A stretch of DNA of 64,000 nt from Lytechinus pictus. Taxonomy: Eukaryota. Under the pieces are notes generated by a model. The model saw nothing but the letters and a program-made list of their open reading frames with translations, was not told the DNA's origin and ran no database searches. The stretch is from the NCBI RefSeq assembly GCF_037042905.1, contig NC_087258.1, forward strand, positions 15,748,001 to 15,812,000, read 5' to 3'. Below are positions 57,701 to 59,305 of this stretch, piece after piece (position 1 is the stretch's first letter; each line of letters begins with the position of its first letter). The position numbers and the translations under genes are program-made.

Positions 57701-59305
57701 TTGACGAATGTGTGGTGTGACTAAAAACATGATATGAGAGCTAAGATTCCTGGTACATTCTCACAACGAAGATATAATTGACCGTCATATCACTGATATT
57801 GAGAATACTCACAATTTTTCCCAAAGAGTATTCTTTTACTCTGTGATTCATTGCCGACATACTGAATCTAGCCATAGATAGAGAGCATCACATGCAAGTG
57901 CAACTTAAGGTCTTCGTATAGCTTCTTGAGTCAATAACTCACCAGGTTGTTCTTGGTGAGGAAGCACATGGTTTCTCGAAGGCCACTTGTGATGATACTT
58001 GATGCATAACCTAGGAAGATAGTACACTTAGAGGGCGCCCTAGCCGTCCAGGTTTCAGAACTGTGCCGACTGTAATTCTCCATCATTGTCCATTTCTCCT
58101 CCTCTGTCAGGGGTTCAACTTTCTTAGCCAGCTAAAAGAAAAGAGGCAAAAATCCTTTACTCTCCGAAGACTAGATACTTCATACTTTACCTACCATACC
58201 CTCCACTAGACATGACTTGTATAATGACCCAAGAAGATCTATCATACCTCCCTTTGGATTCCTGAAAGTACTACATCTGGGACACCATATAGACTAGGAA
58301 CAAAGAGTGACAACAGAATCGATCAGCGTAAGCCGCGGATGGTTATTTGCTTTGTCTGATTATATAGGGGTGCTAGTGAAATGACGGTTATATTTATAAA
58401 CGAGGATTTATTTATTTATCTATTTATAACAAAATAAATAAAACAAATGACACCTACAACCCCCAACGTCGTTTTTAACCATGTTTTCCTCACTTCAAAT
58501 CCATTATTTGAACTATAATGAAATCAATGATATGCCATCACTGGCGTACCTAGGATTTTCCAGAGGGGGGGCAAATTTTATGGAGGATTTTTCGTCCGCG
58601 AAAAAATTTGACAAGCCGAAAAAAAAAAAAAGGTCTTCAGTTTAGTTCACGTCCCCTGTATCAGTTGTGACTCGTCAGGGGGCAGGAATACGTCCCTTGC
58701 ATGAGTTGTGACTCGTCAGGGGGCAGTCTGCCTGCGCTAGTGTATGCCATGACTGGAAGAGAGGTAGACCATCTTTAACACTATGTATAACGATCCGTAG
58801 GCCTAAGTTATAGAACAAGACACCACTTGGAATAAAGCCGACCTCACCGTCCAAGATCAACCCCTTCTATCAATTGCCCTCGCTTCAGAAATAGCCAAAC
58901 CATAGAAAAAAAGACAAAATGGAGGGAGTCATGACAGGGACTGGAACATACCATTCTCTTGATCTCCTCCACTGCAGCGCCAAAGTTTGAGGCTTGAAAC
59001 CCGACGGTCCGCATCGACTCCATGATCTTGTTATAATCGATGGCCTGGCTGAAGTCATACCCTCTGACGGGGAGCGGATTACTCGATGTCAAATCATTGA
59101 TCTTATCCTCAATGCTCCCCGATGACAACTCCGCGGGGAGTTCCCTGTAGGTTTCCCGGAGTTCATAGGCGCCGGTAGACGACTGGGTGGTCGAGGTGGA
59201 GGGTGGGGACCGGACTGACTGAGAATAGGTTGGGGACGAAGCAATAGAACGGCAGCATAGGCGAACAGAAGGTGTGCTTAAAGCCTGGAAAATTCGTGCA
59301 TACAT
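51639..59305 (-). CDS. DHPS: Deoxyhypusine synthase-like protein (divergent paralog, putative mitochondrial presequence), 8 coding exons, 422 aa
   Basis: Exons 58952-59305, 57943-58131, 57340-57558, 55595-55681, 54850-54961, 53691-53794, 52771-52902, 51639-51710; all GT-AG, in phase, no stops. Motifs [62 protein letters not shown]. Confidence 0.95.
52160..52450. repeat. Dispersed repeat family, unclassified (also ~15852-16020, ~44326-44490, ~59832-60000)
   Basis: Shared core GCAATTTTTCGTCAGCTC...CTGTCCC...CCAATTTTCGACAA, found in both orientations. Confidence 0.6.
52771..52902 (-). CDS. DHPS: DHPS-like coding exon 7
   Basis: [32 protein letters not shown]. Confidence 0.95.
53440..53563 (-). 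mobile_element. Degenerate tRNA-derived SINE
   Basis: Minus strand reads GTGGCCGAGTGG...GATTCGATTCC; same family as the fragment at ~16060-16167. Confidence 0.5.
53691..53794 (-). CDS. DHPS: DHPS-like coding exon 6
   Basis: [21 protein letters not shown]. Confidence 0.93.
54240..54473. mobile_element. CMC/EnSpm-like MITE (copy 3, inverted)
   Basis: Reverse complement of 6180-6418; TG flanks. Confidence 0.75.
54555..54810 (-). mobile_element. tRNA-derived SINE with MetaSINE-like central domain
   Basis: Minus strand reads TGGCTCAGTTGGTAGAGCG...GGTTCAAACCCC then GTCAGACCAAAAGACGTTAAAAGATGG; split fragments of the same family at ~55805-56243. Confidence 0.75.
54850..54961 (-). CDS. DHPS: DHPS-like coding exon 5
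   Basis: [19 protein letters not shown]...IDIAE. Confidence 0.95.
55458..55570. mobile_element. hAT-like MITE
   Basis: CAGTG.CGGACCGTGACCCGGAGG hairpin arms; 8-bp TSD TGTGTACG (55450-55457, 55571-55578). Confidence 0.85.
55595..55681 (-). CDS. DHPS: DHPS-like coding exon 4
   Basis: [29 protein letters not shown]. Confidence 0.95.
57340..57558 (-). CDS. DHPS: DHPS-like coding exon 3
   Basis: [18 protein letters not shown]...NRAGNIFVP. Confidence 0.95.
57943..58131 (-). CDS. DHPS: DHPS-like coding exon 2
   Basis: [19 protein letters not shown]. Confidence 0.93.
58539..58742. mobile_element. hAT-like MITE
   Basis: CACTGGCG...CGCTAGTG ends; TSD TATGCCAT (58531-58538, 58743-58750). Confidence 0.8.
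58952..59305 (-). CDS. DHPS: DHPS-like coding exon 1
   Basis: [10 protein letters not shown]...VRGYDF...GFQASNFG...KRM. Confidence 0.9.

Follow-up and report, generated by a model that had tools for sequence, protein, structure and literature searches.

Deoxyhypusine synthase (DHS, or DHPS) is, to our knowledge, regarded as a cytosolic enzyme with one known protein substrate, eIF5A, and the only well-studied departures that we know of are the homospermidine synthase (HSS) of plants and the paralog pair of trypanosomatids. Here we describe a DHPS paralog encoded on the minus strand of a 64,000-nucleotide stretch of the genome of the sea urchin Lytechinus pictus (GCF_037042905.1, contig NC_087258.1, positions 15,748,001 to 15,812,000), which is referred to below as the window and to which all coordinates refer. 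The reading that we favor, with a probability of roughly 55%, is that this is an expressed, lineage-restricted DHPS paralog of camarodont urchins (Lytechinus and Strongylocentrotus) that carries a predicted mitochondrial matrix presequence and uses some acceptor in place of eIF5A. The gene as such was already on record: its predicted 422-residue product matches RefSeq XP_063965203.1 ("deoxyhypusine synthase-like") residue for residue, albeit as an automatic annotation only so far. A literature search covering DHPS paralogs, mitochondria, sea urchin or echinoderm DHPS or homospermidine, and the RefSeq accessions found no account of this gene. What is new here is the targeting-type extension, the remodelled docking surface and the possible organellar role, none of which has been described previously.

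In plant HSS the active site is conserved while residues of the tunnel entrance and of the eIF5A-contact surface are changed, and the enzyme transfers the aminobutyl group to small amines and does not modify eIF5A (PMC11848025). The urchin paralog shares this pattern of a conserved active site and a remodelled tunnel entrance and likewise arose by duplication of DHS; the two origins are independent, and the urchin case is in an animal. The VXXXD or IXXXD signature of plant HSS is not found in the paralog, whose KHH loop (I349-C-Q-A-N353) reads IXXXN and is DHS-like, using a correspondence of plant HSS positions 269 and 273 to this loop that we infer. The likeness to plant HSS is one of evolutionary logic; motif and lineage differ. 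We know of no organellar presequence reported for plant HSS, and no report of homospermidine in sea urchins was found in the literature. The trypanosomatid pair (DHSc and DHSp; PDB 6DFT) also consists of a second DHS paralog beside the primary one, with one paralog devoid of catalytic activity and the other impaired (PMC11848025). The urchin paralog differs from these in its intact catalytic residues and its targeting-like extension.

The locus consists of eight coding exons, with GT-AG at every intron of the model, and the product is a member of the DS family (Table 1). It matches Pfam DS (PF01916) over residues 94-414 with 364.5 bits against a cut-off of 27, and it aligns to human DHS structures with an E-value of about 1e-116, human residue 27 being paired with paralog residue 76. 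A first-pass annotation of the window had proposed an organelle-targeted second DHPS with a mitochondrial-type presequence, and the N-terminal peptide that it quoted is the exact minus-strand translation of 59160-59305. There are 79 residues before the VRGYDF motif (it had estimated about 80), compared to a median of 29 among 123 full-length DHS-family proteins, and its description of the first 47 residues as containing four Arg, many Ser and Thr and no acidic residue agrees with our count of 4 Arg, 0 Lys, 0 Asp or Glu, 12 Ser, 6 Thr and 4 Pro, giving a net charge of +4. In the same 123 proteins the first acidic residue stands at a median position of 3. Asp and Glu together make up 13.9% of the remaining sequence, at which frequency a run of 47 residues with neither would arise with a probability of about 9e-4, and the acid-free N-terminus exceeds chance. 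As a group trait, an acid-free N-terminus of 40-48 residues with four Arg is seen only in the echinoid paralogs among these proteins; two isolated gene models of other animals, P0227 and P0270, likewise begin without acidic residues.

Full-length orthologs from Lytechinus and Strongylocentrotus were identified by a profile search, with the profile built on the one acceptable alignment (A5); the misaligned MAFFT alignments A1, A3 and A4 were discarded, and A2 was partly misaligned. The search recovered one protein from L. variegatus (XP_041479462.1, 422 aa) and three from S. purpuratus (XP_796333.4, 413 aa; XP_030842369.1, 410 aa; XP_030829206.1, 414 aa). In all five paralog-type genes the extension is 74-79 residues long and begins at the same Met1. 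The L. pictus and S. purpuratus proteins agree at 52-57% of residues 1-47, at 58-64% of residues 48-80 and at 84-86% of the domain, and columns 1-39 have accumulated at least 31 changes in the five genes, a rate of 0.79 per column that is about 3.8 times the 0.21 of the domain. In spite of this turnover, each of the five genes has four Arg and no acidic residue in its first 39 positions, with the acid-free stretch extending for 39-47 residues. One Arg has shifted from position 4 to position 10 among the orthologs, although the total stays at four, and acidic states account for 0 of 53 at the variable columns within columns 1-39 and 27 of 176 elsewhere. An R-x-[IV]-A motif at 19-22 is kept in all five orthologs, and the core PS[VI]RLC[CS]R is also retained. 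The presequence character, which the first-pass annotation had suggested should be looked for in echinoderm orthologs, has therefore been kept in L. variegatus and in the three S. purpuratus genes despite rapid change. We regard this conservation as targeting-peptide-like because the extreme N-terminus turns over fast under a strict compositional constraint; such a pattern is what targeting peptides show and is unlike that of an unconstrained tail or a mistranslated 5' untranslated region (UTR).

A search of protein representatives with exon 3 yielded a single paralog-type fragment, P0003 (72% identity), all other matches being canonical-like, and a follow-on search with this strongylocentrotid-like fragment gave nothing further. 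The exon-1 peptide matched only two canonical exon-1 open reading frames in an index of 5.8 billion proteins, a length-limited search that is uninformative for orthologs, and a run-index look-up of the extension DNA gave matches in the same species only and is uninformative on conservation. Residues 1-60 match only the gene itself in a search of its own genome, with no sign of capture from another gene or repeat.

With translation starting at the ATG at 59305, about 50 residues are added ahead of an otherwise normal-length DHPS N-terminus. We propose that the first 20-47 residues are most likely a cleavable mitochondrial matrix-targeting presequence because they are acid-free, contain four Arg and include a conserved core at residues 13-23 with the R-x-[IV]-A processing-type motif. 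The extension is like the matrix presequences of the TOM20/MPP/Icp55 pathway in its N-terminal position, its lack of acidic residues, its Arg content and net charge of +4, its fast turnover under compositional constraint, its R-3-type motif, and a phi-x-x-phi-phi-like motif, [IM]FQA[ILV]. R19-S-I-A fits the R-3 pattern and R19...S28 the R-10 pattern, both being pattern matches only.

Several features weigh against this reading. The peak hydrophobic moment of 0.57 in an 11-residue window (residues 11-21) is reached in 1533 of 5000 shuffles (31%) of the first 25 residues; Pro12 and Pro25 break helices, and the AlphaFold2 model contains a helix of only four residues within residues 1-43. The extension also has more Ser, Thr and Pro and less Ala and Leu than a textbook animal presequence. 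Cleavage at 21/22 would leave about 58 residues before VRGYDF, exceeding the canonical N-terminus, and we infer the loss of eIF5A recognition, discussed below, from residue substitutions alone.

In the main rival explanation, the extension is a disordered Ser/Thr/Pro-rich regulatory tail, for example for phosphorylation or interaction, on a neofunctionalised paralog that stays in the cytosol. We consider this unlikely, albeit deserving of serious attention: Ser and Thr make up 18 of the first 47 residues and Pro another four, residues 1-61 are predicted to be disordered (AlphaFold2 with a 33-sequence alignment; predicted local distance difference test score, pLDDT, below 50), amphipathicity is no better than in the shuffles, and the PSVRLCCR core is conserved beyond what many presequences need. 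However, a generic disordered tail is not expected to bar Asp and Glu through at least 31 substitutions, nor to hold the number of Arg at four while relocating one of them. The acid-free block moreover occupies the very start of the protein, ahead of an acidic DHPS N-terminus of normal length, and the R-3-type motif at residues 19-22 is conserved.

The segment that follows the putative presequence bears on a further claim of the first-pass annotation, that the AVLxxS ball-and-chain helix of canonical DHPS is absent. The literal motif is indeed not there, but a helix is predicted at the equivalent position, residues 65-73, which lie 7-15 residues before VRGYDF within the conserved acidic segment; the human ball helix occupies residues 11-17. 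On this model the paralog N-terminus looks like a DHPS N-terminus of normal length, with a diverged ball-and-chain candidate, to which about 50 residues have been added.

We also considered whether the N-terminus could direct the paralog to the secretory pathway, to a peroxisome or to two compartments, as it is N-terminal and uncharged to basic. A classical signal peptide was rejected by inspection, the longest hydrophobic stretch that could act as an h-region being five residues (IFQAL). The type 2 peroxisomal targeting signal (PTS2) follows the pattern R-[LIVQ]-x5-[HQ]-[LAF], and this too was rejected by inspection, as neither Arg-Leu/Ile position fits. We regard these destinations as distinctly improbable, and a matrix presequence remains our preferred reading of the extension.

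The paralog is expressed. Two studies provide assembled transcript contigs (X1, 3385 nt; X15, 4026 nt) that contain exons 3, 2 and 1 with the predicted junctions, and raw reads over exons 1-3 have the strand expected for a minus-strand mRNA. The first-pass annotation had named two candidate upstream exons, each with an in-frame stop and no in-frame ATG, as support for the ATG at 59305 being the start. One of these, ending at 61788, is used and does have an in-frame stop with no in-frame ATG after it; the joint from 61788 (or 61783) to 59323 (or 59318), across an intron of 2464 nt, is present in X1 record 1, in X15 record 6 and in one raw read of X20, a stranded RNA-seq run from 2026. The other, ending at 59460, is not used, since RNA depth stops at 59323 in all runs examined. 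The ATG at 59305 is the translation start, because a TGA closes its frame 43 codons upstream and no in-frame ATG intervenes, and the splice to 59323 in RNA bears out the earlier assignment.

That the extension is an annotation artefact, with the true start elsewhere and the N-terminal 80 residues being translated 5' UTR, is very improbable on this evidence. The leader is long and multi-exon, with a short upstream open reading frame (uORF), and spurious N-terminal extensions occur in some vertebrate DHPS database models (for example P0227 and P0107). Against this, besides the upstream in-frame stop, there is no other ATG before VRGYDF, and the frame is open in five genes of three species, with Met1 common to all. 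The next in-frame Met is residue 95, past VRGYDF, and starting there would cut a region that human DHS cannot do without: the human enzyme is inactive and forms no tetramers when residues 1-52 are missing (PMC7226451).

We note that the contigs extend 5' by another 316-905 nt of leader, which lies outside 62024-63200. The total length of the leader, 552 to 1146 nt or more in the contigs, is unusual. Run X15, from a second individual or population, carries three exon-1 variants: N76D, a synonymous change at R54, and P35S (sites 59080, 59146 and 59203, respectively). Asp at residue 76 is the residue found in L. variegatus, and P35S preserves the Ser/Thr/Pro-type composition without introducing an acidic residue into the presequence-like part.

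The catalytic residues of human DHS are kept in the paralog (human numbering, with paralog residues in parentheses): K329 (K390), H288 (H347) and W327 (W388), along with the spermidine anchors D243 (D300) and D316 (D377), E323 (E384), and E136/E137 (E193/E194). The roles of the residues in the spermidine/NAD pocket are taken from human DHS structures (PMC7226451). Two pocket positions are replaced, N292 by Q351 and N106 by S163, the former altering the contact to spermidine N10. The paralog nonetheless appears to keep every residue needed for NAD-dependent dehydrogenation of spermidine and for formation of the enzyme-imine at Lys390. In contrast, the surface that docks eIF5A is largely replaced. 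Among nine interface residues (N173, Y176, L295, S240, M244, F247, Y250, I271 and F272) only Y176 and F247 are kept, the others being changed as N173E, L295A, S240G, M244F, Y250R, I271E and F272S, and there is a two-residue insertion after the KHH loop relative to canonical DHPS. In human DHS, N173A or L295A each abolishes hypusination, and mutants of the interface retain little eIF5A binding (PMC10042821). The Glu at the N173 position and the Ala at the L295 position are also present in the S. purpuratus copies, and the Glu in P0003 as well. By these residues, the paralog does not look like a bona fide eIF5A-modifying DHPS.

These substitutions also bear on whether the paralog could be a regulatory or partner subunit that forms a heterotetramer with canonical DHPS, as in the trypanosomatid pair, and tunes eIF5A hypusination. 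DHS is an obligate tetramer with active sites formed by two chains (PMC7226451), in T. brucei two paralogs assemble into a heterotetramer according to work cited in PMC11848025, PDB 6DFT is among the structural matches, and the two urchin proteins are 57% identical. All of the checked catalytic, NAD-site and spermidine-anchor residues are retained, however, unlike in the dead trypanosome subunit, and the paralog's own eIF5A-contact residues are replaced. A targeting-like extension would in addition part it from a cytosolic partner. We therefore find such a role improbable, though slightly less so than the other destinations considered above.

The canonical DHPS itself is encoded elsewhere. A PF01916 scan of the whole genome gives two loci, the paralog on C14 and a canonical DHPS on C15, and the "second DHPS" of the first-pass annotation is thus not the only DHPS of this genome. 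The C15 product is 380 residues long and has a canonical N-terminus, in which 25 residues precede VKGYDF and the AVLVQS motif is present; the introns of its gene lie between the same aligned residues as those of the paralog. The C15 protein is 68-74% identical to vertebrate DHPS, compared to 48-55% for the paralog. Relative to canonical DHPS of human (PDB 1RLZ, 6XXJ and 8A0E) and of C15, the paralog thus has the same fold, family, intron placement and catalytic residues, and differs in its added N-terminal residues of presequence composition, the lack of a literal AVLxxS, the replaced interface, N292Q and the KHH-loop insertion. In a tree of 54 DHS proteins the nearest row to the paralog is the C15 copy, with an end branch to the paralog that is about three times longer, although the tree is poorly resolved and too weak to date the duplication.

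Paralog-type genes differ in number between the species. Three current RefSeq genes were found in S. purpuratus (P0274, P0243 and P0276), two of them on one 35-Mb contig, and one locus in L. pictus, which points to a lineage-specific expansion of the paralog.

If the presequence were removed on import, the mature enzyme would have intact catalytic residues, with the substrate-tunnel entrance and eIF5A-docking surface replaced. Since both of these are replaced, the 4-aminobutyl group would most likely be passed to an acceptor other than eIF5A, the candidates being a small amine, as for plant HSS, or a lysine of another protein; alternatively, the enzyme may just cleave spermidine. A genome search for a second eIF5A gene as a potential mitochondrial substrate found one locus only, a number that is a lower bound in this exon-by-exon search, and with one locus found, no gene stands out as an organellar eIF5A that the enzyme could modify. 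No counterpart of EF-P or eIF5A has been identified in animal mitochondria (PMC11381339). We put forward only tentatively the fuller version, in which an active aminobutyltransferase, blind to eIF5A, is imported into the matrix of camarodont urchins and either makes an uncommon polyamine, for example homospermidine, or deoxyhypusinates a mitochondrial protein. If true, this would be a polyamine-dependent pathway of a kind not described in any animal organelle, and either a second cellular use of the aminobutyl group of spermidine or a new polyamine product inside mitochondria. The paralog also bears on mitochondrial translation, and the gene is present in the tractable species L. pictus, L. 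variegatus and S. purpuratus.

Table 1. Features of the DHPS paralog locus, in window coordinates. Human residue numbers are given in parentheses.
Feature	Position	Strand	Remarks
Start codon ATG (Met1)	59303..59305	-	Met1 position common to all orthologs
5' UTR portion of coding exon 1 (18 nt)	59306..59323	-	Start context ACAACGATGT, A at -3
Non-coding 5' leader exon	61788..62023	-	Spliced to 59323; GT donor and AG acceptor contexts present
In-frame TGA	61896..61898	-	43 codons upstream of ATG; no in-frame ATG between
Upstream ATG	61964..61966	-	Only one in the confirmed 254-nt leader; 4-codon uORF (MIYW) in another frame
Coding exon 1	58952..59305	-	Residues 1-118; VRGYDF at 59051-59068; splice 58952 to 58131 in contigs and raw reads
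Coding exon 2	57943..58131	-	Residues 119-181; splice 57941/57943 to 57556/57558 in contigs and 15 raw reads
Coding exon 3	57340..57558	-	Residues 182-254; E193/E194 (E136/E137); E230 (N173) at 57412-57414
Coding exon 4	55595..55681	-	Residues 255-283
Coding exon 5	54850..54961	-	Residues 284-320 and base 1 of codon 321; G297 (S240), D300 (D243)
Coding exon 6	53691..53794	-	Remainder of codon 321 to residue 355; K346-H347-H348, Q351 (N292), A354 (L295)
Coding exon 7	52771..52902	-	Residues 356-399; D377, E384, W388; catalytic Lys390 (K329) at 52798-52800
Coding exon 8	51639..51710	-	Residues 400-422 and stop codon
Presequence-like region, residues 1-47	59165..59305	-	4 Arg, no Lys, Asp or Glu, 18 Ser+Thr; AlphaFold2 pLDDT <50
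Best-conserved extension core, residues 13-23	59237..59269	-	R15, R19; R-S-I-A at 19-22; fits R-3 (MPP/Icp55-type) and R-10 patterns
Acidic segment, residues 48-79	59069..59164	-	Length and position match canonical DHPS N-terminus; holds predicted helix
Predicted helix, residues 65-73	59087-59113	-	Candidate ball-and-chain helix; AlphaFold2, pLDDT about 72

Two divergent DHS-family proteins that served as alignment scaffolds, P0150 and P0083, are without the SWGK catalytic motif, P0150 having no Trp-Gly-Lys at that place, and the two could be DHS paralogs of other eukaryotes that lack catalysis. Within the intron that separates the leader exon from coding exon 1, the summed depth of RNA contigs reaches about 64,000 at 59467-59860 and 60452-60648, on both strands and with many loose ends, which suggests that these segments are a high-copy interspersed repeat transcribed elsewhere in the genome. 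Within intron 5, ARAGORN calls a tRNA-Val(CAC)-like gene at 54742-54812 on the same strand as the paralog, and this could be either a real tRNA gene or the head of a tRNA-derived short interspersed nuclear element.

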